Assembly (NCBI GenBank): GCA_048013815.1
Contig: CM106585.1
Coordinates: 3,038,001 to 3,102,000, forward strand
Length of the DNA: 64,000 nt
Reading direction: 5' to 3'
Source: Setoptus koraiensis
Lineage: Eukaryota; Animalia; Arthropoda
Part shown: positions 3,626 through 38,445 of the stretch, in pieces
Layout of the letters: every line of letters starts with the position of its first letter
Position numbering within the stretch: position 1 is the stretch's first letter
Program-made: the position numbers and the translations under genes
Notes under the pieces: generated by a model
Database searches by the model: none
Told to the model about the DNA's origin: nothing
Seen by the model: only the letters and a program-made list of their open reading frames with translations

Positions 3626-4933
3626 ATGCTTACCCGAGCTGCCATCGAGCTACGATCGCGTTCATTGCTGTCAGCTTTGCTCAATAGTAATGGAAATACT
3701 ATCACACAAAAGATTGTCCTCAAGGCCATATCCGAACATATTATTACGTATCCTCAATCCGCTGAACTATTCAGATATGGCAGGGGAAGCTTGTTAACAT
3801 TGTCTAGATTCTCGGATGATCTAGCCGTGCAGACTGAATCTCGACAAGCGTTATCTCTCTTGGGCTATTCAGAACCACCCAAGACTAAAGGAATCAAAAT
3901 TCTCTCTATCGATGGCGGTGGCACTAAAGGTCTTGTCTGCATAGAATTATTACGTTGCATAGAAAAACTGACTAATAAGCGCATACATGAATTGTTTGAT
4001 TTGATATGTGGAGTTAGTAGTGGTGCAATCATCACTATGGCTGTCGGATCCGGCAGGATGACACTGGATAAATGCGAGCAATTATATCGCGATCTTAGCC
4101 AAACTTTATTTGTCGCTGACATGTGGAGAGCTGCGCCCAGACTAATTATGAATCATGCCTATTATGATACAGCTGTGTGGGAGTCAATGCTAAAGCAACT
4201 GTTTGGGTCGACAAGTCTCATTTCTTTATCAAAAGACCAAAATATGCCCAAATTGATTGCAGTTGCAGCCATAATGAACACTCCATCGATACAACCCTTC
4301 TTATTTCGTAATTATCAACCGAAAAAATGGTCAGAGAGTAGATTCAAAGGTTGCTGCAAGGCTGAAGTTTGGCAAGCCGTCAGGGCCTCATCAGCAGCTC
4401 CTGGTTTTTTCGAAGAGTTCAAGTTCAATGATTTTATATTACAAGACGGCGGTGTTCTCGTCAATAACTCTACCGGCATAGCTCTTAGTGAGGCGAATAG
4501 CGTATGGTCTGATGAACCAATTCAATGTATTGTATCTATCGGAAGCGGAAGATTCATTCCTATGAATAAGCCAATAGTCACTAGTGGAACATCTGCCATA
4601 GAGAAACTATCACGTCTTGTTGAGTCAGCTACAGATACCGAGATGATACATATAATTCTACATGATTTACTACCAAACGGTGGCTACTATCGGCTCAATC
4701 CTACATTGAGTGAATACTTAACTATTAGTGAGAACAGAAAGGTAAAGTTAGACAAGATGAAACTAGACACAGTGATGTACATTAGAAAGAACGAGGTTAA
4801 ACTCCGTAATTTATCAGAGAGCTTGCAACATGAAAGACCGTTTCATAGACGATGCCTAGATTGGTTGAAAGCCCAAATTTCTATGTTTCAAGGTAGGAAA
4901 ATCTTCATAAAACGTGCCATATCATCTCTTTGA
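3626..4933 (+). CDS. PNPLA8: Calcium-independent phospholipase A2-gamma-like patatin phospholipase, intronless, 435 aa
   Basis: ILSIDGGGTKG glycine loop, GVSSG nucleophile motif, RASSAAPGFF, QDGGVLVNN (DGG), CIVSIGSG, YYRLNP; upstream RQALSLLGYSEPP region typical of PNPLA8. Confidence 0.88.
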   Translation: MLTRAAIELRSRSLLSALLNSNGNTITQKIVLKAISEHIITYPQSAELFRYGRGSLLTLSRFSDDLAVQTESRQALSLLGYSEPPKTKGIKILSIDGGGTKGLVCIELLRCIEKLTNKRIHELFDLICGVSSGAIITMAVGSGRMTLDKCEQLYRDLSQTLFVADMWRAAPRLIMNHAYYDTAVWESMLKQLFGSTSLISLSKDQNMPKLIAVAAIMNTPSIQPFLFRNYQPKKWSESRFKGCCKAEVWQAVRASSAAPGFFEEFKFNDFILQDGGVLVNNSTGIALSEANSVWSDEPIQCIVSIGSGRFIPMNKPIVTSGTSAIEKLSRLVESATDTEMIHIILHDLLPNGGYYRLNPTLSEYLTISENRKVKLDKMKLDTVMYIRKNEVKLRNLSESLQHERPFHRRCLDWLKAQISMFQGRKIFIKRAISSL

Positions 4934-9733: not shown

Positions 9734-11257
9734 TTTATTAACGTCTTATTAACATATCTTTACATATTTTAGCCGTGGCTATCGTGCCACTCATAAGTTG
9801 TCACAAGTGCTAATTGGACTAATTCATCCAATTGGCTGCTGTGCGCTAGTTAAGCGATCTGTGTTGATCGCACTTGTGGTGCATTAGATCACACGATCTT
9901 GTAGACTGTCTGTCTACAAGATCTGTCATTTGCTCTCTTAGTTGCGCCTTGCAACTAAGAGAGGATCGATTATTACAACCCCCCGGTTGTAAAATTGGCG
10001 ACCCGACAATTAATCTGTTAAATCACCTGATCATACTATTGGATGGTGAATAAAAAAAAGTGATATTAATGTGGTGTAGTTGTGTCGGCTTGGCGAGCCG
10101 AGGTGAATGTTGTTTGAACGTTGAGGACAATGAATTGTTGTTGTGTGTATGCCACCAGGCTTTTGATTTTGTAAGCTAGTACAAAATCGTCCGTTTCCGG
10201 GCAACCAGGTGTTGTTGCTAGAGCGACGATTTTGTTGATAAGGTTGTCCCTTATCTTCTCCAGCTTAACCTTCTCTGTCGCGTCTTTCGCTCTCTTTCTG
10301 ACAATCCTGTCGATGTCCTTATACCACCTACTAAACAGAGCCTTTTGGTGACTTGGGGTGCCCTTGAGGTCACGAGTCTTTTTGAATTGCCGTTGTTGGT
10401 TGTTCTTTCTTGGCTTGCTCTTCTTATTTTTTGTATTTTTCCGCATAGGCGTAGGTAGGCCGGAAGCGGAAGTGTGCGGTGTGGGTGATCTAGATGTCTG
10501 GGTCAATTAGCAGTCTAGCATCACCTCTATCATAGAACAGTATTCTGAATCGCACGTCGCGCAGCTCTTGTTGGGTGAACTTGTTTACGCGCTTTTTGCA
10601 GCCTTTGAGGTTGTCAATGGGCTCCCAAGTGGCGGCGGATGCTGGGTAGTTTGACCAAAGGACTAGATATTCCAGTCTATTTGTGATGTTGTTGTGTCTT
10701 TTTGCGAGGATTCGTTCGACCTCGAACACGTCAGAGTCCTCGCTATCAACGCTTGTTGTGGATGCCTCGCTGCTGTCCGAGGCGGAAGCGCTGCTTCGAG
10801 ACGTTATGTCGTCGTCGTCGTCGTCGTTATCGTCTTTAGCTGACCACGAGGGCACTTTATCGAGCAGCTCGCTCATCTGTGCTTTGATAGTTTGTGGGCA
10901 GCTGTTGGGTATGAGCTGATGAGCGGGTGGAGCTAAATAGCTTGGTGCCGAGTACTCTGGAGCTGGTTAGCTGGGCGGTGCGGAGTGACTTGGTGCAGAG
11001 TAGTCTGGTGCGGCTGAGTATGGTGTGGAATAGGCTGCTGGTGTAGGATGGTGCCGAGTAGCTTGATGAAGCTGTCTATGTCGGTGCCGATCAAGGTGGA
11101 GCTGCGTAGCTCGATGCTGGGCCGAGTAGCTAGGGCTTGATGCTGTGTAGCTTGTTGCTGGTGCAGGGTAGTTTGGAGCTGGATAGCTTGGTCGTGCAGC
11201 TTGGTGCTGAGGTCGTGTAGCTTGGTACCCAGCAACTAAGAGAGGATCGATTATTAC
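9734..11257 (-). mobile_element. Internally deleted LTR retrotransposon remnant (PPT plus 3' LTR start at 9977; 27-bp LTR start at 11257)
   Basis: gcaactaagagaggatcgattattaca occurs at 9951-9977 and 11231-11257; on the minus strand it reads TGTAATAATCGATCC, and the 9977 copy is preceded by GGGGGGT. Confidence 0.6.
10490..10876 (-). CDS. Chromodomain-containing ORF with acidic/Ser-rich N-terminus (inside the LTR remnant)
   Basis: FEVERILAKRH..RLEYLVLWSNYPASAATWEPIDNLKGCK; aromatic cage residues F, W, Y present; same frame as the Pro/Ser/Tyr-repeat ORF 10967-11275, separated by one TAA. Confidence 0.85.
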   Translation of the reverse strand: MSELLDKVPSWSAKDDNDDDDDDITSRSSASASDSSEASTTSVDSEDSDVFEVERILAKRHNNITNRLEYLVLWSNYPASAATWEPIDNLKGCKKRVNKFTQQELRDVRFRILFYDRGDARLLIDPDI

Positions 11258-14866: not shown

Positions 14867-15021
14867 CTGAATTGGGCCAGAAGCAATCTATTCCGCTTGC
14901 ACGAATTATCAGTTACCATCCGAGACAGAATAGGACGCGGCAGTGGAAACTCTACCATCTACGTGACCTGGCTCACCAATACAGCCATAGAATCCTCATG
15001 AGGAAATAGAAAGAAGTGTGG

Positions 15022-15521
15022 NNNNNNNNNNNNNNNNNNNNNNNNNNNNNNNNNNNNNNNNNNNNNNNNNNNNNNNNNNNNNNNNNNNNNNNNNNNNNNN
15101 NNNNNNNNNNNNNNNNNNNNNNNNNNNNNNNNNNNNNNNNNNNNNNNNNNNNNNNNNNNNNNNNNNNNNNNNNNNNNNNNNNNNNNNNNNNNNNNNNNNN
15201 NNNNNNNNNNNNNNNNNNNNNNNNNNNNNNNNNNNNNNNNNNNNNNNNNNNNNNNNNNNNNNNNNNNNNNNNNNNNNNNNNNNNNNNNNNNNNNNNNNNN
15301 NNNNNNNNNNNNNNNNNNNNNNNNNNNNNNNNNNNNNNNNNNNNNNNNNNNNNNNNNNNNNNNNNNNNNNNNNNNNNNNNNNNNNNNNNNNNNNNNNNNN
15401 NNNNNNNNNNNNNNNNNNNNNNNNNNNNNNNNNNNNNNNNNNNNNNNNNNNNNNNNNNNNNNNNNNNNNNNNNNNNNNNNNNNNNNNNNNNNNNNNNNNN
15501 NNNNNNNNNNNNNNNNNNNNN
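15022..15521. other. Assembly gap (500 N)
   Basis: Run of N. Confidence 1.
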
Positions 15522-15704
15522 AGTATGATTGGCAACCAGTATCAAACCTCCACTCCTACTGTAGCTCATCTGAACAAGCGCGCACTTACTACTCACACAC
15601 TATCTATCTAAACCAAACTGCAGTTTTAACTGCAAAACAAACAATCGAAAAATACCCGGCAGCTGGTTCACAACCACTACCAACCCATCAATCACTCAAA
15701 TAAT

Positions 15705-16528
15705 GGTTGTTGTAGCGATTAGGTCCCCACTCAGATCTTGATGAAACTTCCGGTGTGGGTCCACCTTGACCCCAATAGAACGGAAAAAGTAGTCCGGATG
15801 CCAGGAAACTTCCGGTTCCGGTTTGACATAAAGTTGAGGCTAGAGATCTGAAACTCACCAGACCGACGTTTCAGAGAACGCTGAACACAATGGCATAATT
15901 TTCAGCTCTGTGCGACTTCCGGTTTTCAAGATATCGGCATATTTATAGGTTTGGAAGACCGGAAGTTGACGAATTTCAGCTTCGCTGCACTCGGGTATGA
16001 ACCTGCGATAGGTCTGAGAACTCGGCCTGCGGCCTCGTAATTTGGAGGCCGTCACATCTCCGTCGTCGCTAACGCGACGACTGCGTGCGACGGGAACCCT
16101 TCGGGTAGGGTTGATGAGCGCTTCGGGTATCGGGCTGCGCCCTCTACCCTCCGCTCACATGACTGCAATCCAGACACAGATGTTCGGAATGGCAGAAGAA
16201 TACGATAATGCATGGTTCTGCGCATAAGTGGCACAGAATGAGTCCGCTGAACGCAGCCGCACAGATCCGGCCACACCCTCGGATCAACTTAAACCTCTTT
16301 ATCTATCGAACCGGAAGTCATAAAAGATTAATTTTGATGTCATTATGCTCCGCTAGGTGTCTTCTATCTAATTCTGAAATTTGGGAGCTCTATCACGATA
16401 TTTTTGTATTTCCGGAACCGGAAGTTTCCTGGCATCCGGAATACTAAATTCATAGTATGGGGCCCCTACGGGGCCCTTGTGTGAAGTTTCATCGAAATCC
16501 GAGTGGGGACCTAATCGCTACAACACCC
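15705..16528. mobile_element. Hairpin-core TIR element, complete (824 bp)
   Basis: GGTTGTTGTAGCGATTAGGTCCCCACTC / GAGTGGGGACCTAATCGCTACAACACCC; 8-bp TSD CAAATAAT. Confidence 0.92.
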
Positions 16529-16558
16529 CAAATAATTATCATTTCAAGCTTCAAAAGA

Positions 16559-17446
16559 ATGAACCAGCTGTCGGGTACTTGGTCGCAAGTCCGGCTTGAC
16601 CGAGAGGTTCACCTCTCGGACAAACGAGCTTGCATCGAGTGGTGCCAACGAGTTGGCATGATACCTCAGACAAAACAATGCCGAAAGGATAGGGTAGCCT
16701 ACAAGCTAGAGCCGCGTCCTGATCTGATCATTGGGCACGGATGGCGCTGCCCTAAGTGCCGTCTAAGGAAGTCGATCGGGTCAGGCACGCCCTTCGAAGA
16801 AAGTCATATCGACATAGGGAGAGCCCTGATGATCGCGCTGAACTTCGCCAACAATGCAACATATGCCGACACTGCAGTGGCCTGCTCCTATGACGGTGAT
16901 CAACCAAGCCACACAACAATCACGCGCTGGTTCGATTACTTCAGGAGTCTAACATCTGATTGGGCAGTATCATACCAGAACCCCGATACTCGAATCGGTG
17001 GTCCAGGAAAGATAGTTCAGATCGATGAGGCATCGATAGGACGCCGTAAATATCACCGAGGGAGATCAGTGACAGGGCAATGGGTTCTGGGCATGATCGA
17101 TGAAGATGGAGAATTGAGATTGGAGATATGTCCAGGAAACAAGAGAACTCAAGAGGCTCTAATACCCCTGATTGAACAGCACGTGGAAAAAGGATCCGAA
17201 ATACACACAGACGAGTGGCGTGCCTACCAGGTGCTCGCAACGCGTGGGTACACTCATAGAACTGTGTGCCACAAGCGACAATTCGTGGCAGCGGACGGTA
17301 CCCATACCCAACGAATTGAATCAAGCTGGAGATCCTTGAGGAGGAAGTTCAACAAGGGAGGCATAAGAATTGAGGACATAAGCGAGCACATGATCGAGTA
17401 TCTGTGGCGTCGAAACTGTGCCCGTAGGCAAGCTGACCCATTCTAG
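16559..17446 (+). mobile_element. Merlin (IS1016/ISXO2-like) DDE transposase, probably with a premature stop
   Basis: WRCPKC zinc ribbon, VQIDEASIGRRKYHRGR, QWVLGMID, GSEIHTDEWRAY, HRTVCHKRQFV, GTHTQRIESSWRSLRR; DPF followed by TAG, frame stays open ~35 codons further. Confidence 0.9.
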
Positions 17447-17869
17447 ATTTTTCTCAACCTCGTTCTCATAACGATCAATGAGAGTAATGAGATCTTTCAC
17501 AGAGGTGACATTTTTGATACAAGTCATCATATTGAGGCGACCAACTGTTGAGCTAGGTAGGCTTGTATATAGGCTAATTATCACATCTTTCTCCTGTTGG
17601 GCACTTGGGGCAGAAGGGTGCGGCTAGGCATGACTCATCGGATGTTGTAAAATAGCGCCGTCTTCAAAAAATCTAAAAGCTGAGATTTCTCCCTAATGTT
17701 CATCATAAGTCTCAAATGTGCTGAATTTCAACGAATTTCACTAATATTGAATCAAAAAATTCTGGTAAAATATTGCAAAAAGCCGGCAAAAAAAGGGCAT
17801 GGGAATAGCGTATTTGTTCTCAGTTCGATCAGCCGAGAACAGATAGGCTATAGCCAGCCCCTTCTGACA

Positions 17870-18114: not shown

Positions 18115-19250
18115 GGGTGTTGTAGCGATTAGCGACCCAGTCAGATTTCGATGAAACTTCACACATGGGGCCCGTAGGGCCCCCTGACAACAGTTTGAGT
18201 GGTCCGGAAGTGCGGAAACTTCCGGTTCCGGTTTTACAAAAAAAGAGAGCTACGGCAATGAAACTCGGTTGACTGATTGATTAGAGCATGCTGAACATGC
18301 TAAACTCATTCTCCAGTTTCTGCGACTTCCGGTTCGGGAGATATCGAGGGAATTCTGGATATAGGAGCGTTTGGGTGTTGTAGCGAATAGTGCCCCAGTC
18401 AGATTTCGATGAAACTTCACACACGGGGCCCGTAGGGCCCAAAAACAATAACCTCGGTGGTCCGGAAGTGCGGAAACTTCCGGTTCCGGTTTTACAAAAA
18501 AAATGAGATACAGGCTTGAAACTCACTATACATGTGAATCAGAGCACGCAGAGTACGATAACGTCAATTTCAAATTTGTCTCACTTCCGGTTGACGAGAT
18601 ATCTGGATGAAACCGCTGCAGGGGCGTAGACGGGACGGAATACCCGCGCGCACGAACAAATACGTGCGCTATCAGGCCCATTCTGTTCAACACTTAAGGA
18701 TGCGCAGCTCCTTTTCTGTGCCGGATACATGTTCAGAGCCTTCCATGCGTCCCCATTTCGTTCTTTTTCTATCATTCGTGTATGGATTGCAGTCATGTGA
18801 GCGGAGGGTAGAGGGCGCAGCCCGATACCCGAAGCGCTCATCAACCCTACCCGAAGGGTTCCCGTCGCACGCAGTCGTCGCGGGAGCGACGACGGAGATG
18901 TGACGGCCTCCAGAATACGAGGCCGCAGGCCGAGTTCTCAGACACACCGCATGTGCATCCCCGAGCGCAGCGAAGCAATAATTTGGTCACTTCCGGTCTT
19001 CTAACCCTAGTAATATCTCTATATCTCGAAAACCGGAAGTCGCACAGAGCTGAAAATTATGTCATCGTGTTCAGCGTAGCTTGAAACGTCTCTGTAGTGA
19101 ATTTCAGAGCTCTAGATTCAACTTTTTGTAAAACCGGAACCGGAAGTTTCCGCACTTCCGGACCACTTTTCCCGATGGTTTTGGGTCAAGATGAACCCGT
19201 ACCGGAAGTTTCATCAAAATCGGGGCGGGGCACTATTCGCTACAACAACC
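18115..19250. mobile_element. Hairpin-core TIR element with a duplicated left arm (second arm start at 18373)
   Basis: GGGTGTTGTAGCG... / ...TCGCTACAACAACC; 8-bp TSD AGAAAGAC. Confidence 0.9.
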
Positions 19251-20447: not shown

Positions 20448-21013
20448 GAACGCTTATTCAAGGCAACGATATTATTATATGCGATGAATATATTTGAGGC
20501 TATCTGCCTTGGATTCGAGAAATCCCTCGACAGTAAATTATAATCAATTACGCTGAGTATTTATCACTAAGAAATAGTCTGATTTACCGATGGATAAAGA
20601 TATCCAATGTAGGACAATATTGAGGACTTTTGGTTATCACCTCTTACTTTGGTTTTCTAATTGTGTCGGTAATTGATACTACTTATTTATTCTATATGTT
20701 AATTAGCTAAGGTGCAACATATCTGTCGAGAGCTATTACCATTCTAAGGCAAAAATTGATATTGCACTCATATTAGATAGTCGCGTGTTCGACTCAACTC
20801 TTTTGTTACATTGAATTTCATTCTATTGCCTCGATTACCGGATGACCATCGAAAGCGTGTTAGGTCATCGTGTTTTACATGTTATTGTCGAACGGAATTG
20901 AGATACACCGACCAGTACCACGTTGCAATGCATGGTGCGGTGGAGGGGCGTGTTCAGGGTGCGGGTATTTCCCTACCGCTGTTGAGGGTACGGCAGCGCA
21001 GCATCACAACGTA

Positions 21014-21468
21014 TGTCATGCCGCACCGTGCACGCGTACACGCCCACACACATCCGCGCGCATACGGGCCGCGCACTACGCCTTATTCAAACCCGCACAG
21101 GCGCCAGTGACCTGGCAAAATGAAAAGTATTGCAAATCTTCCCGGCAACCTTTCAGTTGGCTGGCGCCAACTGAAACAAAGAGAGAATCTAGCTTGGTGT
21201 GATACACTATCGATAGATAATAACGCACTATATACATCATTGTACGTGTTTTCTCCGACACACAGATTCATTCGATATCAAGCCGTTGACCAATAAACAT
21301 ATTGACAGATAATAATAGTAATTATCCGTCGTTACTAATTAATAAAGCTAAATTGATATTAAGCCAACATATATACAACAGTAATAATTCGAAACTGGTA
21401 GTTCTGCCGGCAATTTATTCTAACGACGAACACACCCCCTTAGCTGCTAACACTCCCACGGCACGACA
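21014..21468 (+). repeat. 5' LTR (455 bp)
   Basis: TGTCATGCCG...GCACGACA; no difference from 28169-28623 found by eye. Confidence 0.95.
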
Positions 21469-21470
21469 GT

Positions 21471-21488
21471 TGGTAGCAGAGCGTGGTT
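21471..21488 (+). promoter_or_regulatory. Primer binding site, initiator tRNA-Met
   Basis: TGGTAGCAGAGCGTGGTT, complementary to a tRNAiMet-type 3' end (..CTCTGCTACCA), 2 nt after the LTR. Confidence 0.85.
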
Positions 21489-21529
21489 AGACTTTAGATT
21501 TTACCTGTTGAGGAATAGAAGAGTTAACT

Positions 21530-22654
21530 ATGGCCGGGAGAAGTACGAGAAGTGGTTCATCTAATGCCAATCAGACTTTGTCAGCGAATGACATAACTCA
21601 AAACATCGCAGAGGCTCTCCAACAGATCCCCAACATGAAAATGATCTACCAGATGAAGAGGTTTGATGGTCGGGGCAACGACCACGACGAGGCCAGAAAT
21701 TTCTTCAGAGAATTCGAACTGTTAACCACTGGCCTCTCTGATTCGCTCAAAATTCTTGGCTTAAAAATAACGTTGCGCAATGAGGCACAAGTGTGGTATA
21801 AAGAGGAGATAGCTGAATCTGACGATTGGAAGACAATTGCTCAAAAATTCAAAGATAGGTTCTATGCTCCAAATCGAGAGCTCGACTTGATTCAAAGGCT
21901 TCATGACTTGAAATATAATGCAGATGGTAACCAAACACTCATGTCATATCTCGAATATTACATACGCACTTACAAAAAAGCCCGCAAATTGCCTATTCAA
22001 CCATCATCTCAACAACAAATCGACATCATTCAAAGCTTTTATACCACCTTGCCATCCTCGATAAAAGGCCAACTGAACCTTATGACCGCGGTCTATGAGG
22101 TCAAGACACTGGATGAACTGAAGAACTACATTAAGAGATATGAGAATGATGTGAAGTCTCACCTCAACATGACTCCGAAACCGGACCAAACAGCTATGAT
22201 AAAGCTCTTCGAAAACCTCAGCAAAGGTATTCAAAGTCAAATAAAAGAACAATTGGACTCTGTCGTGGCGGCTAAGGATGAGATCAAGAAAACCGTGGCA
22301 ACTTTCGTACCGAAATATCAGAACCACCACGAAAATGTGCAACCCCATCAATCTTATAAGCGCAAATATGCTCAAGAGTACAATAGAAATTACCAGAAGC
22401 CTCGCTATGATAATTACAACAGGAATCGTGGACAGTACACTGATAGAAACCAGAGATTCTCATATCAGAAACCAATGCTTCCCCAAACTAACCAGCAGCA
22501 TCCAGCAATTGAAGGCAAAAAGAACGACGACATCGGTAACAAATTTAAACAACAGTACGAGCAGAAATACGGGCCAGTCCCAGCTCCTTGCAAATTTTGT
22601 GATGGTCATCACTTGCACAAACACTGTCCGTTCAACCTGGGCGATTTAAAATAG
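21530..22654 (+). CDS. gag: Gag (374 aa) with C-terminal CCHC knuckle
   Basis: RFDGRG..EARNFFREFE, LRNEAQVWY, CKFCDGHHLHKHC (CX2CX3HX4C). Confidence 0.9.
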   Translation: MAGRSTRSGSSNANQTLSANDITQNIAEALQQIPNMKMIYQMKRFDGRGNDHDEARNFFREFELLTTGLSDSLKILGLKITLRNEAQVWYKEEIAESDDWKTIAQKFKDRFYAPNRELDLIQRLHDLKYNADGNQTLMSYLEYYIRTYKKARKLPIQPSSQQQIDIIQSFYTTLPSSIKGQLNLMTAVYEVKTLDELKNYIKRYENDVKSHLNMTPKPDQTAMIKLFENLSKGIQSQIKEQLDSVVAAKDEIKKTVATFVPKYQNHHENVQPHQSYKRKYAQEYNRNYQKPRYDNYNRNRGQYTDRNQRFSYQKPMLPQTNQQHPAIEGKKNDDIGNKFKQQYEQKYGPVPAPCKFCDGHHLHKHCPFNLGDLK

Positions 22655-22689
22655 AGAGGGTGATCGTTAATGAGATCGACCGACCACCC
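22645..22689 (+). promoter_or_regulatory. Predicted -1 ribosomal frameshift signal (slippery heptamer plus hairpin)
   Basis: T TTA AAA in the gag frame just before TAG; pol is in the -1 frame; GGGTGATCG (22658-22666) pairs with CGACCACCC (22681-22689) with one mismatch. Confidence 0.7.
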
Positions 22690-25600
22690 GAGAGAGTTGT
22701 TAAAGGTCTCACAAAGACTTCTGATTTGATAATTATAAGGCTCACTGTTGATAAGCTCGAAGTATCTGCTATAATCGATACCGGAGCCACTGCATCCTTC
22801 TTACCCCAGTTTGGAACTGTTATGCAGCTATTAAGACCCGATACCAGTCCAGTTAATGTACGAGCTCAAAACGCTGACAATGCATGGACGTTTATAACAA
22901 TGTGTGCTTGTGTACCTCTAGGCCTATGTGAATTCCCAGAGGAACAAAGAAGAGCTAAATTCTTGATTTCCCCCGGCGGAACCGATATCTTAGATCACGA
23001 CTTACTTTTGGGGTTACCAGAAATCTTATCCCTTGGACTGAACATCATCAATGACGGAGAAAGTCTTTCAGTTGTGAAGAATAAGCGCATAATTAAAGAG
23101 ATATCTTCATCACAACTTGAGCATCAAGTGCACCAAAAATGTCTTGTAAGATCCGTTAATAACATAACAGATCGACTGACCAGCGAGAGAGGACAACTCG
23201 AAACCAAGTTACGTTCATTTAACTGTGTATTCGCCGAAGAAATTAGATCACGAATAAGATGTCAACCTATGGAAATTCCATTAATCTCCAGAAATCACCC
23301 ACAAGCTAGGTTGCGAAGACATAATCCTGAAGAGATAGCTGCAATCAAGGTCATTGTAGACAGATTGATCGATTCAGATATAGTGGAAGTTTCGCGATCG
23401 AATTTCGCCTCCAACGTACGATTGGTGCCAAAAAAGAATGGTCAACACCGACTGGTGATAAACTATATACCATTAAACCGTATCACTAAGAGAGATTGTC
23501 ACCCGCTCCCCAGGACAGAGGATCTGTTTCTATGCCTTAGAGGAGCTAAATTCTTCACAACCTTAGACGGGACAGAAGGGTTCTTTCAGATCCCGCTCGC
23601 TCTCCAGGACCGTCACAAAACAGCTTTCGTGACCCCTCATGGATTGTACCAATATAAGTGTTGTCCTTTCGGCTTGACAAACTCACCGGCCGAATATCAG
23701 CGAACAATGAATGACATCTTCTCCGAAGGTCTCTACAGATGGTGTGTCGTATATGTCGACGACATATTAGTTTTTGGTCGGACTATAGAAGAACACAACC
23801 AGCGGCTGCTTTGGGTGATGGAAAGATGCGTCAAATCCAACCTTAAACTCAAGAGGTCCAAGTGTAGACTCCTGCGAACAGAGGTAGAATTCTTAGGACA
23901 CATGATTGCCGAGAATAAAATAGGCCCTGTCCGTGGCAAGACCGACCCGATATACTCAATTCTACCGGCAGCTAAGAGAGATGTGCAGATCATATTAGGT
24001 ACTCTGAACTACTATGCCAGGTTCATTCCAAATTATGCTTCAAAGACGCAGTTTTTGCGCGAATTAATCAGAGATGACGTTACGTTTGAATGGACACGAG
24101 ACCAAAGTGCCGCTTTAAACGATCTGCGATCAACACTCGAACAGGCGGAATTTCAATACATCCCATCGTCAGACGAGCCTAAGACAGTCGAAATTTTCAT
24201 TCAGGAGAGGACTATCGAAGTCGTCTGCTTCGGTCATAAGGACCTCCTCATATCGAGAGCAGGACATGTGCTGACAACAGCCGAATCCAACTATGGTACA
24301 ATAGAGAAACACCTGCTTGGCATCATACTGGCTCATAAGAAGTTTGGTGTCTACTTGCCAAGAGAACACACAACTTATGTTACGTCTTTCAAAGGCTTAG
24401 ATCACCTACTAGATGCTAAGGAATTACCAGCAAGGATTGAAAGACTTATATCACGACTTCCGCCGAACATAATACCGATATTCAAGGTGAGAGAATCTGA
24501 CTCCATATCTGAACTTAGTGCAGATAGTTCAAGCCCATTAGAGGAACTATTTTTCACCGACGGGGCTTGCGTAAAAAATGGGACTAAAGAATGTCGCGCA
24601 TCATGGGCCGTGTGTGCCACATTCAATAGGAAATTGACGCATTCAGGCATAGTTAAAGACGAAAAACCCTCCAATCAAGTGGCTGAGTTACGTGCCGTTA
24701 TTGAAGCCTTAAGAATAGCCAAACAAAACAACTTGAAATCAGTTGTAATCAAATCTGACAGCAGGTATGTGACCAATGGTTTCAATAAATGGCTATCCAA
24801 TTGGCTTAAGAACGGATGGAGGGACCATAAGAATAAAGAAGTATTCCATCGGCAGATGTGGGAAGAACTCATCCAAATGAAGCAAGATCTTCAGGTCAAG
24901 TGTCTACATATCAAGGGTCACTCTGGAGACGCAGGTAATTGCGAGGCTGACACCTTGGCGAAGGTTACGCTGGAGAGAGATCTCATGGATAAGTGTACTA
25001 CTCATTCGATTGCTTCCAAAAGAATATTCACAGTCGCACGCGAAGATTGGGACGATGAAATGAACACGATAGAGCAAAATCTATCAAACGACCCAATGTC
25101 AGCGTATATCATAGTTGAAGATAAGCTCTATTTCGTGGATAAACATGCCTTGGACGAATACAAACTGCGATTGTTCATACCGAAAAGCAAGAGAACTGAA
25201 CTTATAAAGCTAGCACACTACCATCCCATATATGGAGGTCACCATGGTGTGAAAAAGACATCCTACAAACTGAGAGATTTCTACTGGCCTAAAATGAGGT
25301 TGAGTATCGAAGAGGCCATCAGATCGTGTAGATCTTGTCAACTATTTAAGCCACGTAATGGGAAACCACCCGGCCTGATGCAGCTGCTTCCAGTCACCTC
25401 TATTTTCAAGACTACACATGTTGACATTGTTGGACATGTCACCACTTCTACTGACGGTAACAGGTGGATCATCACAGCCATTGACTCATATTCTAGGTAC
25501 GGCTACGCGAGAGCAAGGCCTGAAGTAACGTCAAAAGATGTTATAAAATTCCTAGAAGAGGATGTTTTCTCAAAACACGGACTGCCAGACACGATTATAT

Positions 25601-26973
25601 CTGATAACGGGGCACAGTTCACGTCGCATGAGTACAAATTATTCATGAAAGTCAGAGATATTGACATACACTATACATGCGACTATCACCCTCAGTCTAA
25701 TGGCAAGGACGAGAGGTTCAATGGAACCCTCGTCAAAATTCTCAGGAATTACATTAATCTGCGTCAAAAGGATTGGGATCGACATCTCATGTGGGCCCTC
25801 TATAACTATAATACTACAAGAAATGAATCTACGAAAGCCAGCCCATTCAATATACTCTATGGAGCTGAGCCACGCAACCCTCTCAAGCAGTCAAACACAA
25901 TAAACGGGGAAGAGGCACCACTCGCAAAGGATTATCAAGACATGGTACGGAGATACGTTGATGCAAATATAGACATCAACCATCGTGTTCACAAATATTA
26001 CTATGACAAGAAGCACGAACCACAAAACTTCAGTGTTGGGCAGTTAGTGCTACTGAAATCCCACAAGGTACACCCTTCAATTTGTAAGAAGCTTGCCCAC
26101 AAATGGGTCGGACCATTCATGGTGTTGGACTTCATAGGAGAACGACACAACCCAAAAGCTCTTCTAATTTCTAATTTAACGACACTAGAGAATAAACGAG
26201 CATCATTCTCAGAGGTCAAGCCCTATTACTTGGACGATACAACAGATGAGATAGAAGACGAGCTTGCACAGTCTTTTGATGAGCTTCAAATGCATTCTCT
26301 GATGGATAGAATACAAAGTTCACCAGTTAACGACCCTGGCCAGGTTGTGGACGAGTGTTCTGAGTTTTTAGTTAATCAGAGTTTGCTCCCCGAAGACACA
26401 CGAATTCGAATAACTCTACCAGCACAGACAGACGGTCCCCAACCGGAGTCGAACATTGCAGTAAACGTAGAAATAAGTAATTCGCCCTCACCATCGACAG
26501 GTACGACGGACCCTGATACGGCCTCACCTTCGATCGGTACGACGGAGCTCAACAATACAACGCCTTTGCCTCGTTCTTCAACAGGCCAAAGGATAGCAAT
26601 ATCCTTGCCATATCCCTTGGCAGGTATTGAACATGCAAGTTCGAACTACGATAACTATGCTACTCTTGTCGGGTCGCTACCACAAAGTAGTCATACCACT
26701 AATGAACAGTTCACGCCTGTCGTAGCGCAAACGCAGAGCGAACAGCCAACATTTAATCATTCCCAACAGCTAACTAACAATCTTCTAGGTGACTCGAGAC
26801 CCATTTCCATCGGCAGAAATGGAAATAGTGACTCAATAACGCAAGCAGATGATGAGGAATCACACACTGTACCGGATTATGCTATAAATGACGCTAGAAT
26901 ACAACCCCCACAGGCACATGGGTCACATAGGCAGAAGAGAAACATCAGACCACCAGTTCGGTATAGGAATTAA
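22660..26973 (+). CDS. pol: Pol: protease - RT - degenerate RNase H - second intact RNase H - integrase - long low-complexity tail
   Basis: IIDTGA; PFGLTNSP, YVDD; FTDGAC/AEL/KSDSRY/GHSG..NCEADTLA; HHCC finger, HVDIV, SDNG, DERFN, WVGPF. Confidence 0.95.
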   Translation: MIVNEIDRPPERVVKGLTKTSDLIIIRLTVDKLEVSAIIDTGATASFLPQFGTVMQLLRPDTSPVNVRAQNADNAWTFITMCACVPLGLCEFPEEQRRAKFLISPGGTDILDHDLLLGLPEILSLGLNIINDGESLSVVKNKRIIKEISSSQLEHQVHQKCLVRSVNNITDRLTSERGQLETKLRSFNCVFAEEIRSRIRCQPMEIPLISRNHPQARLRRHNPEEIAAIKVIVDRLIDSDIVEVSRSNFASNVRLVPKKNGQHRLVINYIPLNRITKRDCHPLPRTEDLFLCLRGAKFFTTLDGTEGFFQIPLALQDRHKTAFVTPHGLYQYKCCPFGLTNSPAEYQRTMNDIFSEGLYRWCVVYVDDILVFGRTIEEHNQRLLWVMERCVKSNLKLKRSKCRLLRTEVEFLGHMIAENKIGPVRGKTDPIYSILPAAKRDVQIILGTLNYYARFIPNYASKTQFLRELIRDDVTFEWTRDQSAALNDLRSTLEQAEFQYIPSSDEPKTVEIFIQERTIEVVCFGHKDLLISRAGHVLTTAESNYGTIEKHLLGIILAHKKFGVYLPREHTTYVTSFKGLDHLLDAKELPARIERLISRLPPNIIPIFKVRESDSISELSADSSSPLEELFFTDGACVKNGTKECRASWAVCATFNRKLTHSGIVKDEKPSNQVAELRAVIEALRIAKQNNLKSVVIKSDSRYVTNGFNKWLSNWLKNGWRDHKNKEVFHRQMWEELIQMKQDLQVKCLHIKGHSGDAGNCEADTLAKVTLERDLMDKCTTHSIASKRIFTVAREDWDDEMNTIEQNLSNDPMSAYIIVEDKLYFVDKHALDEYKLRLFIPKSKRTELIKLAHYHPIYGGHHGVKKTSYKLRDFYWPKMRLSIEEAIRSCRSCQLFKPRNGKPPGLMQLLPVTSIFKTTHVDIVGHVTTSTDGNRWIITAIDSYSRYGYARARPEVTSKDVIKFLEEDVFSKHGLPDTIISDNGAQFTSHEYKLFMKVRDIDIHYTCDYHPQSNGKDERFNGTLVKILRNYINLRQKDWDRHLMWALYNYNTTRNESTKASPFNILYGAEPRNPLKQSNTINGEEAPLAKDYQDMVRRYVDANIDINHRVHKYYYDKKHEPQNFSVGQLVLLKSHKVHPSICKKLAHKWVGPFMVLDFIGERHNPKALLISNLTTLENKRASFSEVKPYYLDDTTDEIEDELAQSFDELQMHSLMDRIQSSPVNDPGQVVDECSEFLVNQSLLPEDTRIRITLPAQTDGPQPESNIAVNVEISNSPSPSTGTTDPDTASPSIGTTELNNTTPLPRSSTGQRIAISLPYPLAGIEHASSNYDNYATLVGSLPQSSHTTNEQFTPVVAQTQSEQPTFNHSQQLTNNLLGDSRPISIGRNGNSDSITQADDEESHTVPDYAINDARIQPPQAHGSHRQKRNIRPPVRYRN

Positions 26974-27078
26974 CAAGATGCGTCGAAACAATTTAATTAC
27001 GGTCTGTTCACCTCCGATGAGGTCATATTTATTTATGTCATTCAGAAATAATTAATTCTGCCGAGGGAATATATGCAT

Positions 27079-28020
27079 CTACTTCGAATGTTTAGCTTTG
27101 GCAGCTTCTGAGGCCTGGTTGGCATGATCCTTCGAGGTCAAAATGTGTTGAAAAGTAGACTTGAATGAGCTACCATTCAGTTTGAAACAGTAAGGACAAG
27201 TTCCCCCGTTAACTACTGATCGCTTATATAACAACTTGATGCGAGCCTTCGCCTCCACTAGTGCGGGAACCACTATCCCTGCATCTTGATTCGCCTTAAT
27301 TTTGGCATCGTATAGTCTGTCGTTGATATCTTTAACGATATGAGCTGGATATATGAGCCGCATCGGGAGCCAACGATACAGACTCAGGTACTTAGCCAAA
27401 GTCACTAACATGGCTATCACATGGAAAGAAGAGGCACCTGGATATCCGCCACAAACAACCGTTCCGAAATCATGTTCGTAGGATTCGATAACAGGATTAG
27501 CATTGACCATTTCTAACCACAATCCAATATTATCCTTCTCGAGGCATAAATTTAAATGGTCCACGCACAAACATCTCTTGTTCAGAGTGTCAACAAAGAC
27601 AATGGCTTGGAATTGGTTCTCTAAATACAAGTCTGATAATACGGTCAAAATATCATAGTTTTCGGGGTCCAAAACCTCATCTGGAATATGCATATCACGG
27701 ATTATTTTCATCTTCAGGCCACAGGAATCCTTAAAATGACGTTCCATAGTCTGATCTACTTTGGCCACATCATCATCTAATAGTTCCTCGTTATCCTGCG
27801 AAGGGCTAGGGTCCAATTCAAAGAAAGGAATATTAAATAATCTCCAGTAGTCGACTTTATCTCGGTCGATACCGCGTTTCGATCGCTTTCGTCTGGAAGG
27901 CTGTTCTTTATCCTTGGAACCAACGTTGGGATCATAAATTTGAGTGGCCTCATCCGAGGAGCTAGATTCTTCAATATCAGAGGTGACGTTCACCTCTCGT
28001 GAATGCGATGGACCAGACAT
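27079..28020 (-). CDS. Additional antisense ORF (313 aa) inside the LTR element; unknown function
   Basis: Uninterrupted ATG-to-stop ORF between the pol stop and the PPT; acidic/basic N-terminus, C-terminal CPYC-x13-H-x6-H. Confidence 0.75.
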   Translation of the reverse strand: MSGPSHSREVNVTSDIEESSSSDEATQIYDPNVGSKDKEQPSRRKRSKRGIDRDKVDYWRLFNIPFFELDPSPSQDNEELLDDDVAKVDQTMERHFKDSCGLKMKIIRDMHIPDEVLDPENYDILTVLSDLYLENQFQAIVFVDTLNKRCLCVDHLNLCLEKDNIGLWLEMVNANPVIESYEHDFGTVVCGGYPGASSFHVIAMLVTLAKYLSLYRWLPMRLIYPAHIVKDINDRLYDAKIKANQDAGIVVPALVEAKARIKLLYKRSVVNGGTCPYCFKLNGSSFKSTFQHILTSKDHANQASEAAKAKHSK

Positions 28021-28155
28021 TTGGCAATTTTGTCGGCAGGAGCGATAATTAATTCGAATACTTGATATAATTGAAACAAACTATGTCTGAATTGCTATTC
28101 TCACAAGTCAATAACGGTTATATTCTGAACAAGCATGTGTTTAACACATGTTTTC

Positions 28156-28168
28156 AGAAAGGGTGGAC
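28156..28168 (+). promoter_or_regulatory. Polypurine tract
   Basis: AGAAAGGGTGGAC immediately before the 3' LTR. Confidence 0.6.
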
Positions 28169-28623
28169 TGTCATGCCGCACCGTGCACGCGTACACGCCC
28201 ACACACATCCGCGCGCATACGGGCCGCGCACTACGCCTTATTCAAACCCGCACAGGCGCCAGTGACCTGGCAAAATGAAAAGTATTGCAAATCTTCCCGG
28301 CAACCTTTCAGTTGGCTGGCGCCAACTGAAACAAAGAGAGAATCTAGCTTGGTGTGATACACTATCGATAGATAATAACGCACTATATACATCATTGTAC
28401 GTGTTTTCTCCGACACACAGATTCATTCGATATCAAGCCGTTGACCAATAAACATATTGACAGATAATAATAGTAATTATCCGTCGTTACTAATTAATAA
28501 AGCTAAATTGATATTAAGCCAACATATATACAACAGTAATAATTCGAAACTGGTAGTTCTGCCGGCAATTTATTCTAACGACGAACACACCCCCTTAGCT
28601 GCTAACACTCCCACGGCACGACA
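28169..28623 (+). repeat. 3' LTR (455 bp)
   Basis: Copy of 21014-21468. Confidence 0.95.
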
Positions 28624-29131
28624 CGTACCACCCTTGTGCCAGCTCTATGCCACCTCTAGGCAATCTATGTGCAACCTCTGTGCCCGACGTGTGCATGGGC
28701 GCAATGCGCAAGCAACCAGAATTCAAACTCATTTTTCGCAAAAACCCGGCATTTTCTGGGCAGAATTCTTCCGAATTATGAATCAGCTTGAGACCCTCTA
28801 CAGAAAGTTTATAAAGATTTCCAAATCCGAGGGTCACAGAAACAAATGTTTCTTCGTCAGCGTAGAGAAGATGGCGCCTCGAATCATAACTTATGAGTTA
28901 CTCTCTTAGAGAAGAAGGCTCTTTCAGTTTTTTTATTATAATGTTTGGTACGCGATCTACAGTCTTTCTCTTCTTTTTGATCTTGAACTTGATATAACAA
29001 CTTGACAACTCCAACAGCTCGCCTAGCAACTCCACTCCCGTCCAATTTCCGTCAGTTGTAACTCTCTTGATTCCGCCATTCAAGCTGGACCTCGCATTTG
29101 CCACCATTCAATTTTTAATTTTGTTTTAACT

Positions 29132-29869: not shown

Positions 29870-30362
29870 CTTTCGTGCTGCGATTCAGTAGTGATTGTTA
29901 GAAATTTGCAACTGAGTAAATTACGCCTCTTGTCTCGGTAGTTTTGATTTTATCTGATTAGTTAAACAATCTAGTTAATTATCAACAGCACAATTTCATT
30001 TCACAATTTATGACGATGATTGATCGTCGAACTACGGTTGTTTCACTTTTGCCGAACAGTCTAGATAGTTTTGATTGGCTTGTATCCCCCGGTGAGATAC
30101 AAGATTATAAAATCGATTGAGAGAGTTAGGTGCTGAATCATGAGTATAGGTAATACTATCTTCTCCCCCATCAAGACTATTACACGTATGCTAAATTACT
30201 CTCTAAGTCCTTTCTCATGCTAGACTTATGCTGCTCGATTGGTATTTGCTCATAATGCAGAATAAGATGGAACATCCACAAAGTGCAGCCATGAGAATGA
30301 ATAGTCAATAAGAATCAAAATAATCTCGTTCAAGATTGATCATGTGCTTAGCAACATTGACG

Positions 30363-30910
30363 TTAGATTACAGGATAAGTAAGAGTCACGTTACAAAATT
30401 AGTTGTAGTATGTGTTGTTGAATGTGAATCTATTAACACCCAAATCCAAATTGTATCTAACATTTTCCATGATCAAGAAGACTATTTCGAGATCAATTTT
30501 TTACTTTCTAAATTTTATTGATCAATTTTTCAAGTTTAAATAGTTAGATTACAGGATAAGCAAGAGTCACGTTATAAAATTAGTTGTAGTATGTGTTGTT
30601 GAATGTGAATCTATTAACACCCAAATCCAAATTGTATCTAACATTTTCCATGATCAAGAAGACTATTTCGAGATCAATTTTTTACTTTCTAAATTTTATT
30701 GATCAATTTTTCAAGTTTAAATAGTTAGATTACAGGATAAGCAAGAGTCACGTTACAAAATTAGTTGTAGTATGTGTTGTTGAATGTGAATCTATCAACA
30801 CCCAAATCCAAATTGTATCTAACATTTTCCATGATCAAGAAGACTATTTCGAGATCAATTTTTTACTTTCTAAATTTTATTGATCAATTTTTCAAGTTTA
30901 CATAGTTAGA
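30363..30910. repeat. Three tandem copies of a 181-bp unit
   Basis: TTAGATTACAGGATAAG restarts at 30363, 30544 and 30725; copies differ at very few bases. Confidence 0.95.
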
Positions 30911-37579: not shown

Positions 37580-38182
37580 ATTGGCCTGATTTAGACAAAG
37601 ATGTTGAGAAATTTGTTGCCAGTTGTGATAAATGTCTCAGACGAAAAGTAACTCCAGTTAGTAAACAAGGTTCAAGTGAAGGGATATCATGTGACGAAAC
37701 ATTCAAAATGTGGGCACTCGACTTTATTGAAGAGAGGAAGACAACGAAAGAGAGCAATAAATATATCCTTGTTGCCATTGATGTTTTTAGTCGAATTGTA
37801 GAGGCTATCGCAACCAAAGATACGAGCGCGAGCACAGTTGCTCGCTTCGTGATCAACTCTATCGTCTGTCGATATGACAATGACTCCTCATTCGCATCTA
37901 ATCTGATGAGTGAAGTGACTAAGATACTTGAGATCAAATATACACAATCAACGCCATACCACTCGAAAGAGAATGGCGTAGTAGAGAGAGCTAATCGCTC
38001 GCTTCAAGACAAAATTGCTCTGTTAAATAAGCATGAAGATGAGTGGGATTTATCATTACCCCTAGCTGTGTTTGCGTTAAATAGAAGTTACCACCGTGGC
38101 ACCAGACACTCACCACATGAAATGATATTTGGCAGAAGCTTGAAAATGCCATGTGACCCTCTCAACAACCAATCGAGGGAAG
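37580..38182 (+). pseudogene. Ty3/gypsy integrase fragment
   Basis: YWPDLDKDVEKFVASCDKC..WALDFI..YILVAIDVFSR..DNDSSF..STPYHSKENGVVERANR..SPHEMIFGR. Confidence 0.9.
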
Positions 38183-38445
38183 ACAAGTGATACTGATTCG
38201 ATCAGTATCTCGAGCGCTTAATTTTCTGGATAGACGAGTATCGTTGGAATATACTGGGTGGAAAGGGACCTTTGTTGCGCCGTGTGCCAGGGTAGGGCAT
38301 TTCTTTGCGTATTTTGTCGTTGTTTTCGTGTGCTTTGTGTGCTTTATGCCAACTAGAAAAAAAATAGCACTGATTTATTCTGTCACGTGAATAAACCTAG
38401 TCATCATCACCACCCCAATAGCAACTTAATTAAAATTAAGCGCTA
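38183..38445 (-). mobile_element. Minimal HINE (263 bp) with both ends
   Basis: 3' hairpin/subTIR at 38183-38225 and 5' subTIR/IR at 38425-38445. Confidence 0.75.

Follow-up and report, generated by a model that had tools for sequence, protein, structure and literature searches.

How does a Ty3/gypsy pol gene come to hold two RNase H domains, the first apparently dead and the second of cellular type? Retroviruses differ from Ty3/gypsy elements in two structural hallmarks, one of which is a dual RNase H. To our knowledge, the known origins of such arrangements are few: that in retroviruses, lokiretroviruses, and Odin elements, with an RNase H of the fungi/metazoa type, and those in Tat and Chronos/Archon elements, with an RNase H of the archaeal type. 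An earlier note on the stretch of DNA analyzed here (64 kb, hereafter the window) had described such a pol gene and offered two explanations, an independent acquisition of host RNase H1 by an arthropod LTR lineage or a relationship to the precursor lineage of retroviruses. We analyzed the element, both of its RNase H domains, and the family to which it belongs.

The Window Contains a Complete Ty3/gypsy Element

Positions 21014–28623 of the window are a complete, young LTR retrotransposon of the Ty3/gypsy (Metaviridae) type. Its features and their immediate flanks are as follows.

21010–21013, no strand: left copy of the target-site duplicate, CGTA; the four bases recur at 28624–28627
21014–21468, + strand: 5′ LTR, 455 bp, with TG...CA termini; 455/455 positions match 28169–28623
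21471–21486, + strand: primer-binding-site-like stretch read from the sequence, starting with TGG 2 nt past the LTR
21530–22654, + strand: gag ORF from the ORF list, 374 aa, uninterrupted; weak Retrotrans_gag match, and a Cys/His knuckle toward the end
22660–26973, + strand: pol ORF, 1437 aa, uninterrupted, in frame −1 relative to gag
22717–23034, + strand: protease-like region of pol, with Asp-Thr-Gly at aa 40–42, placed by alignment with relatives
23425–23907, + strand: reverse transcriptase core, aa 256–416 (RVT_1, E = 1.5e-31; Ty3 RT, E = 1e-60)
24181–24489, + strand: RNase H fold of the native Ty3 type, aa 508–610, with the catalytic acids lost (Pfam RT_RNaseH and RT_RNaseH_2)
24490–24546, + strand: inter-domain linker, aa 611–629, where pLDDT dips to 67–80; contains S620
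24547–24969, + strand: RNase H1-type domain, probably acquired, aa 630–770 (PF00075, E = 3e-32)
25177–25692, + strand: integrase, with zinc-binding part at aa 840–899 and catalytic core at aa 920–1011 (Pfam Integrase_H2C2 and rve)
27079–28020, − strand: antisense ORF from the ORF list, 313 aa, located past the pol stop and ahead of the 3′ LTR
28156–28167, + strand: polypurine-tract-like run read from the sequence, 11 purines in 12 positions, 1 nt before the 3′ LTR
28169–28623, + strand: 3′ LTR, identical to the 5′ LTR (455/455 positions)
28624–28627, no strand: right copy of the target-site duplicate, CGTA, matching the left copy

The order of Pfam matches along pol (RT, Ty3-type RNase H, RNase_H, Integrase_H2C2, and rve) is the Ty3/gypsy gene order after gag. 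Together with the LTRs, the 4-bp duplication, and yeast Ty3 as the best solved match (see below), it bears out the assignment to Ty3/gypsy made in the earlier note. A heptamer that fits the pattern X XXY YYZ (T TTA AAA) lies just ahead of the gag stop codon. No Pfam protease model matches the window pol at E ≤ 0.01; aspartyl-protease models match the relatives P0006, P0057, and P0171 at the same place in Pol. Downstream of the integrase core, Gly-Pro-Phe follows a conserved Trp, and its Gly-Pro is invariant in a six-protein alignment, identifying a GPY/F module. An assignment to Troyka was rejected: Troyka elements have CG...CG termini, a 3-bp target duplication, and no GPY/F (PMC12440569), whereas the element has TG...CA termini, a 4-bp duplication, and GPF.

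As regards env, ORFs that fall entirely within the interval from the pol stop to the 3′ LTR do not exceed 55 aa on the sense strand. The antisense ORF in this interval is longer than any obtained in 2,000 first-order Markov simulations (0/2000 reached 313 aa; longest simulated, 210). It has no match in Pfam, in the PDB, or among the proteins gathered in the analysis; its single-sequence AF2 model (pLDDT 35) was not used. When the window was searched by tblastn with pol, gag, and the antisense ORF, the only other copy found was a short gag-like fragment, with no second pol and no solo LTR. Scans of the 64-kb window for tRNAs and Rfam families gave no match and no tRNA gene. Ten ORFs of the window that lie outside the element were looked up by exact sequence, and the collection searched contained none of them.

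The Native RNase H Is Predicted to Be Catalytically Dead

The RNase H of yeast Ty3, with catalytic residues D358, E401, D426, and D469, is an active enzyme that lacks the His loop and is the sole RNase H of its Pol (PMC5371799). In the window pol, Pfam models of this type match weakly at aa 478–599 (RT_RNaseH_2, 1e-7; RT_RNaseH, 3e-8). When the protein was aligned to the Ty3 structures 4ol8 and 7q5b (E = 1e-60), F513, H551, and S576 were found opposite D358, E401, and D426; in the family alignment, S620 faces the fourth native acid, which is Asp in 32/32 controls. All four acids are thus replaced, as the earlier note had read from the letters, and the bounds that it gave for both RNase H domains were right. 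The AF2 model of the native domain has the order β1–3/α/β4/α/β5, with per-block pLDDT mostly above 90. Mean pairwise identity within the family is 0.42 for this domain versus 0.20 for the linker. We conclude that the native RNase H is predicted, from its residues and its model, to be catalytically dead while keeping its fold, and that it is moderately conserved in the family. It may serve as a tether, or connection, between the RT and the domain that follows.

A Complete RNase H of Cellular Type Follows

Pfam RNase_H (PF00075) matches pol at aa 630–769 with E = 3e-32, far above the score of RVT_3. Residues D634, E676, D700, H754, and D764 each align to active-site positions of human RNase H1, and a Trp-rich basic protrusion lies at aa 711–721. 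Among solved structures, human RNase H1 (2qk9) is the best match (E = 1e-23, 87 bits), followed by E. coli RNase HI (E about 1e-16), with retroviral RNases H at E values of 1e-8 to 3e-5 and at most 39 bits. A cellular-type enzyme with a basic protrusion therefore does follow the native domain, as had been claimed. The E values on which the two domain assignments rest lie far outside what chance would give. The AF2 model (pLDDT 92.8) contains two RNase H-like folds, of which the second superimposes on human RNase H1 with a target-normalised TM of 0.86–0.91 and an rmsd of about 1.7 Å for most chains (Foldseek). In both structure libraries, the two-domain model aligns over about 300–350 columns with the connection and RNase H of foamy, gamma-, and lentiviral RTs, in agreement with the retrovirus-like layout proposed earlier. 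Judged by its residues, the second domain would carry the RNase H activity of the element.

The second domain thus shares four acids, the His, the basic protrusion, and the fold with metazoan RNase H1 (human 2qk9). It differs in context: metazoan RNase H1 is free-standing and has a hybrid-binding domain, whereas the domain studied here lies inside a 1437-aa polyprotein, and the Pfam search of pol gave no match to the hybrid-binding domain (PF01693).

Where the domain came from was examined among 1.84 billion representatives. In the nearest 110 RNase H matches from outside the family, a reverse transcriptase was present in 0/110 and the RNase H1 hybrid-binding domain in 23/110. Twenty of the nearest cellular matches were looked up, and the 11 that are named are all metazoan RNase H1. 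Non-LTR retrotransposons also carry RNase H of the PF00075 type, and for some retroviruses they have been suggested as its source (PMC4408406). It is nevertheless improbable that such an element, rather than a cellular RNase H1 gene, supplied the second domain, given the make-up of these 110 matches, the exclusively cellular identity of the named ones, and the basic protrusion and close fold match to human RNase H1, which point to a cellular source.

Identity between the second domain and cellular RNase H1 is about 32%–38%, and the second domains of the family are closer to each other than to any cellular protein. The named relatives are RNases H1 of vertebrates, a sea slug (mollusc), and a crinoid (echinoderm), with no arthropod among them (0). 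The proposal that an arthropod element captured the RNase H1 of its own host is accordingly upheld in part: independent acquisition is favored by the bit scores given below, but an arthropod donor is not, since the named nearest relatives are all non-arthropod.

The Dual Layout Is a Family Trait

At least 69 dual Pol proteins, that of the window included, share the layout of a dead native RNase H followed by a second RNase H. The other members, at least 68 Pol proteins from independent assemblies with about 31%–50% identity, have the second domain at the same position. All 57 closest relatives listed carry PF00075, and the score falls sharply to relatives without it. In the second domain, the active-site residues are kept almost without exception (D 69/69, E 69/69, D 69/69, H 68/69, and D 68/69). 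Three native sites were also scored: they are kept in 1/69, 17/69, and 4/69 dual proteins, and no protein keeps two or more (0/69), whereas each is kept in 32/32 single-RNase-H gypsy controls. Absence of the second RNase H from other copies, an outcome that would have told against the earlier reading, was looked for; all relatives found carry the second domain. It is scarcely credible that this domain came along as a passenger, arose as an assembly chimera, or reflects a single fusion with no role in the element. The pol that contains it in frame is uninterrupted and lies between identical LTRs, and no fewer than 68 other Pols, drawn from independent assemblies, have the domain at that position; its active-site residues are kept in 68–69 of 69.

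In neighbor-joining trees with p-distance-based corrections, the core family comes out as a single clade both by RT (bootstrap 100/100) and by integrase (80/100). Pol-borne second domains fall on one side of a single split in 72 of 74 cases, the exact split having a bootstrap of 45/100; the divergent dual proteins P0057 and P0171 lie outside it. Clades that include both proteins have exact-split bootstraps of 3/100 for RT, 24/100 for integrase, and 45/100 for the second RNase H. We conclude that the dual layout is a family trait, of which only the core clade is well supported. Because the bootstrap of the second-domain split is 45/100 and P0057 and P0171 lie outside it, the second domain may have been captured more than once. 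The clade is diverse and apparently undescribed. No published description of this dual layout in arthropod gypsy elements was found in open-access papers and preprints, in line with the earlier note, whose author knew of none.

RT and Integrase Resemble Those of Ty3

Yeast Ty3 (4ol8 and 7q5b) is the best solved relative of the RT, the native RNase H region, and the integrase of the element. The RT region matches the Ty3 RT/RNase H with E = 1e-60 and 208 bits, compared with 154 bits for caulimovirus RT, at most 84 for foamy-virus RTs, and at most 42 for gamma-retroviral and lentiviral RTs. The integrase matches that of Ty3 in 7q5b with E = 8e-34 and 121 bits; retroviral integrases reach at most 76 bits. 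The nearest non-family proteins to pol are ordinary gypsy Pols. The grouping of RT and integrase with Ty3/gypsy is read from these scores as a proxy.

These scores bear on the second explanation in the earlier note, by which the family would share an ancestral capture with Odin, lokiretroviruses, and retroviruses and would thus be a relative, carried by protostomes, of the lineage that preceded retroviruses. The layout of tether plus RNase H is the same, as is the broad RNase H subtype, fungi/metazoa-like with a catalytic His (PMC10508981), and the 300–350 columns aligned with retroviral RTs in both structure libraries fit such kinship as well. Set against these likenesses are the RT (208 bits to Ty3 versus at most 84 to foamy virus), the integrase (121 versus at most 76), and the second domain itself (87 bits to human RNase H1 versus at most 39 to retroviral RNases H). 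Ty3-type Pfam models still recognize the native domain, and a screen for retrovirus-like RTs in 3,624 animal genomes, 1,710 of them from protostomes, found such elements in sea anemones only (PMC9040795). The score proxies against solved structures do not support the kinship, which we regard as unlikely. Independent capture is favored over it because yeast Ty3 is a far closer match to RT and integrase than any retroviral structure is; independence from the Odin/lokiretrovirus/retrovirus capture rests on these score comparisons with solved structures.

Probable Independent Capture of a Cellular RNase H1 Domain

We therefore consider it probable that the element belongs to a Ty3/gypsy clade whose ancestor captured the catalytic domain of a cellular RNase H1, independently of the retroviral/Odin and the Tat/Chronos/Archon captures. 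The ancestor would have inserted an RNase H1 catalytic domain of metazoan type, lacking the N-terminal hybrid-binding domain, between its own RNase H and its integrase. To judge by its residues, the acquired domain would do all of the RNase H work in reverse transcription, presumably degradation of the RNA template, cutting out of the polypurine primer, and primer removal. The dead native domain would set the distance and orientation of this RNase H with respect to the polymerase site along the RNA/DNA hybrid, much as the connection of retroviral RTs does. Proxies suggest that the capture took place inside Ty3/gypsy, independently of that in retroviruses, lokiretroviruses, and Odin, and likewise of the captures by which plant Tat and oomycete Chronos/Archon elements gained a domain of archaeal type.

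Several known systems share parts of this arrangement. Retroviruses, lokiretroviruses, and Odin, like the element, have a degenerate native RNase H as a tether, followed by an acquired RNase H that bears the His. Odin lacks env, as does the element; in retroviruses and lokiretroviruses env is present, whereas the window element has no env ORF. Unlike in the retroviral/Odin group, RT and integrase of the element are Ty3-like by a wide margin in bit score, and its acquired domain matches cellular RNase H1 much better than it matches any solved retroviral RNase H. Odin has been reported from sea anemones only (PMC9040795); the host of the element is an arthropod, to judge by one host gene.

Tat and Chronos/Archon share with the element a backbone of the Ty3/gypsy type and an RNase H added after the degraded native one, a layout that is likewise fixed across the family; some Tat lineages have an extra antisense ORF at the 3′ end, as in the window element (PMC4408406, PMC10508981). 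What Tat and Chronos/Archon have added belongs to the archaeal type, in which Arg replaces the catalytic His, whereas the family described here has His in 68/69 proteins and the basic protrusion. An archaeal-type additional RNase H was rejected for the element on the grounds of this His, of a PF00075 score far above that of RVT_3, and of nearest relatives that are RNase H1/HI.

Insect errantiviruses are likewise arthropod Ty3/gypsy elements whose Pols contain two RNase H-like folds (eLife 2026, PMC13524379). Their order, a canonical RNase H followed by a degenerate copy with changed strand order, is reversed in the element. An RNase H plus pseudo-RNase H layout of the errantivirus kind was rejected, since the degenerate domain comes first and the complete cellular-type enzyme second.

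Taken further, and with somewhat less assurance, our preferred reading is that a diverse and so far undescribed clade of Ty3/gypsy elements in animals, with at least 69 distinct Pols of about 35%–50% identity, retraced the step with which retroviral RT evolution began, and did so separately from retroviruses and Odin: it took up a metazoan RNase H1-type domain, and its native RNase H became a tether. The window copy, if not others, would also carry a Tat-like 3′ antisense gene. This would make the clade the closest living parallel in animal Metaviridae to the change in Pol inferred for the retrovirus ancestor. If so, it would be a further convergent case, by an animal Ty3/gypsy clade with a metazoan-type RNase H1 domain, and the first in which an RNase H of retroviral type occurs on a true gypsy backbone. 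It would also strengthen the view that replacing the native RNase H is a solution that recurs and can be selected, rather than a historical accident. The many diverged members, together with closely related single-RNase-H elements, would offer a large natural comparison set for the conserved needs of the tether. Screens based on similarity to retroviral RT miss such lineages.

The 64-kb window also contains a PNPLA8-like host gene, whose closest proteins are from mites. The arthropod host named in the earlier note is consistent with this gene, by which the host is probably an acariform mite.

Anatomy of the element

A complete LTR retrotransposon was found on the forward strand of the window, with the following coding regions.

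21014-28623, + strand: complete LTR retrotransposon with LTRs, target duplicate, and uninterrupted gag and pol
21530-22654, + strand: gag, 374 aa, 0 internal stops, 0 frameshifts
22660-26973, + strand: pol, 1437 aa, 0 internal stops, 0 frameshifts

The two 455-bp LTRs start with TG, end with CA, and are identical at 455/455 positions; by the usual LTR-divergence reasoning, this identity points to a recent insertion. CGTA is present on both flanks of the element, a TGG-initial stretch lies 2 nt past the 5' LTR, and a run rich in purines precedes the 3' LTR by 1 nt. The frame of pol is -1 relative to that of gag, and an X XXY YYZ-type heptamer directly precedes the gag stop. In the interval between pol and the 3' LTR, the sense strand has no fully contained ORF of more than 55 aa; hence the element is without an env-like gene.

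The same interval contains an antisense ORF (27079-28020, - strand) of 313 aa with an ATG start. Its length is far beyond chance (reached in 0/2000 simulations; longest simulated, 210), and its codon-position GC pattern is similar to that of gag and pol. It had no match in Pfam, PDB, or the proteins collected in this analysis, and its single-sequence AF2 model was poor. Some plant Tat elements, which also have dual RNases H, likewise carry an antisense ORF at their 3' end. Upstream of the element, on the opposite strand, a short gag-like fragment (17414-17617, - strand) with 44% identity to aa 155-222 of the element's gag is apparently a relic of a related element.

Native and second RNase H domains of Pol

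Pfam analysis of Pol revealed RVT_1 (aa 256-416), weak matches to Ty3-type RNase H models (aa 478-599), and PF00075, the cellular/retroviral RNase H family (aa 630-769, E = 3e-32), with the zinc and core domains of integrase downstream. The RNase H1 hybrid-binding domain was absent from Pol in this search. When the RT and native RNase H region was aligned with yeast Ty3 RT/RNase H (4ol8; 368 residues, E = 1e-60), the first three of the Ty3 catalytic residues, D358, E401, D426, and D469 (PMC5371799), were matched by F513, H551, and S576; the numbering offset was set from the Asn in crystal form 4ol8 that lies opposite an Asp in wild-type 7q5b. In the family alignment, S620 stands at the position of the fourth acid, an Asp in 32/32 single-RNase-H gypsy Pol controls. 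In the second domain, D634, E676, D700, H754, and D764 align with active-site positions of human RNase H1, and a Trp-rich basic protrusion spans aa 711-721. The earlier note had described a dead native RNase H followed by a complete second one at 24181-24972; Pfam bounds and the Ty3 and human RNase H1 alignments bear out both its coordinates and its residues.

Among solved structures, the second domain was closest to the human RNase H1 catalytic domain (E = 1e-23, 87 bits), followed by E. coli RNase HI (E about 1e-16, about 64 bits) and retroviral RNases H (E = 1e-8 to 3e-5, 39 bits or less). An AlphaFold2 model of aa 470-780, built from a 64-sequence alignment, had a mean pLDDT of 92.8 and contained two RNase H-like folds and, between them, a linker of lower confidence; both folds are thus retained. 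The second fold superimposed on human RNase H1 with a target-normalised TM of 0.86-0.91 and an rmsd of about 1.7 A for most chains, and in both structure libraries the whole two-domain model aligned, over ~300-350 columns, with the connection and RNase H portions of RTs from foamy viruses, lentiviruses, and gammaretroviruses. From these superpositions, the modelled layout is retrovirus-like and the modelled second enzyme cellular-like.

Conservation across the dual family

A query with aa 470-780 retrieved five Pols of the same domain composition. The whole-Pol query added 52 Pols scoring from 1349 down to 492 bits, with PF00075 in 52/52; below ~400 bits, ordinary gypsy Pols without PF00075 appeared. 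All dual relatives from these two queries came from assemblies in Logan, JGI, and ENA; NCBI and UniRef contributed none. When 1.84 billion representatives were queried with the second domain, Pol-sized proteins of the family ranked at the top (37-54% identity), the sole exception being a protein of 538 aa whose three tandem RNase H domains put it first by summed score; cellular-sized proteins came next, at about 85-103 bits. In total, 68 proteins besides that of the window contained RT, a native RNase H-like domain, a second RNase H, and IN.

Catalytic residues in the dual proteins and in single-RNase-H gypsy controls
Second domain, first Asp: 69/69 dual proteins
Second domain, Glu: 69/69 dual proteins
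Second domain, second Asp: 69/69 dual proteins
Second domain, His: 68/69 dual proteins
Second domain, last Asp: 68/69 dual proteins
Native D358 equivalent: 1/69 dual proteins, 32/32 controls
Native E401 equivalent: 17/69 dual proteins, 32/32 controls
Native D426 equivalent: 4/69 dual proteins, 32/32 controls

None of the three native acids was present in 47 of the 69 dual proteins, one was present in 22, and two or more in 0. The Trp, Trp, Asn, and Trp of the protrusion are kept in 65/69, 69/69, 65/69, and 62/69, respectively. Judged by these alignments, the native active site is lost in the family, and the acquired active site, with its His and basic protrusion, is complete and conserved. Mean pairwise identity was highest in the RT core (0.58), followed by the second domain (0.47), the native domain (0.42), and the linker (0.20); since the native domain is better conserved than the linker, it is still constrained despite being dead.

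The acquired domain would, from its residues, carry out template degradation, polypurine-primer generation, and primer removal, and the native domain would act as a tether or connection. Ty3 lacks the His loop, which is thought to help product release (PMC5371799); this suggests a possible kinetic benefit.

Four RNase H search matches (P0124, P0140, P0128, and P0135; 509-804 aa) have two or three tandem PF00075 domains, and P0128 and P0135 have RNase H1 hybrid-binding domains besides.

Origin of the second RNase H

With 66 non-dual gypsy proteins for comparison, neighbour-joining trees recovered the core dual family as a clade by RT (bootstrap 100/100) and by IN (80/100). In the second RNase H tree, one split takes 72/74 Pol-borne domains and four short fragments (bootstrap 45/100); the mean distance within the family was 0.93, and the nearest outsiders were at least 1.29 away. 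P0057 and P0171, two divergent dual Pols, have second domains that lie beyond this split; these proteins may be basal members or represent a separate capture. Both have a dead native RNase H and PF00075, and Ty3-type RNase H models score better there.

Against solved structures, the RT scored 208 bits with yeast Ty3, 154 with caulimovirus RT, 84 or less with foamy-virus RTs, and 42 or less with gammaretroviral and lentiviral RTs. For IN, the scores were 121 bits with yeast Ty3, 76 with foamy-virus integrase, and 29 or less with other retroviral integrases. The native domain is still recognised by Ty3-type Pfam models. When 3,624 animal genomes were screened in a published study for RTs resembling those of retroviruses, Odin turned up in sea anemones only (PMC9040795), and a 2023 review of the subject names no dual-RNase-H lineages beyond retroviruses, lokiretroviruses and Odin, Tat, and Chronos/Archon (PMC10508981). 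Together, these data, with scores against solved structures as proxies for a joint tree, favour an independent capture within Ty3/gypsy.

Among the 110 nearest non-family RNase H matches, a reverse transcriptase domain was found in 0/110 and the N-terminal hybrid-binding domain of RNase H1 in 23/110. The named ones are RNases H1 of snakes, turtles, mammals, a newt, a crinoid, and a sea slug, none being from an arthropod; those of roughly 150 aa are without names. Comparison of sequences thus favours a cellular-type donor over a non-LTR element.

Surroundings of the element

The window is transposon-rich and contains several tandem arrays.

3626-4933, + strand: PNPLA8-like gene (patatin, calcium-independent phospholipase A2-gamma), single ORF, 435 aa
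8158-9345, - strand: DDE_Tnp_4 (Harbinger-type) transposase
10490-10876, - strand: chromodomain ORF
16457-17446, + strand: ISXO2-like transposase
18115-18603: tandem array, about 258 bp x two copies, 79%, upstream of the element
30362-30910: tandem array, 181 bp x three copies, 98% identity, directly downstream of the element
37708-38190, + strand: integrase-core fragment
42396-42962, - strand: FLYWCH zinc-finger ORF
46256-47722: complex tandem array, 96-226-bp periods
51614-51991, + strand: copia-type RT fragment

Four ORFs of 170-207 aa overlap in different frames on both strands at 14973-15611, a region that is therefore poor in stop codons; the one ORF of the four that was tested had no match in Pfam. 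By one gene, the PNPLA8-like ORF, the host would be an arthropod and most likely an acariform mite. The closest named relatives of this ORF are from mites (Aceria tosichella, 52%, then Halotydeus, Leptotrombidium, Brevipalpus, and Tetranychus); proteins of spiders are interspersed with those of the mites, ticks and other arthropods come after, and one nameless Logan fragment is 94% identical.
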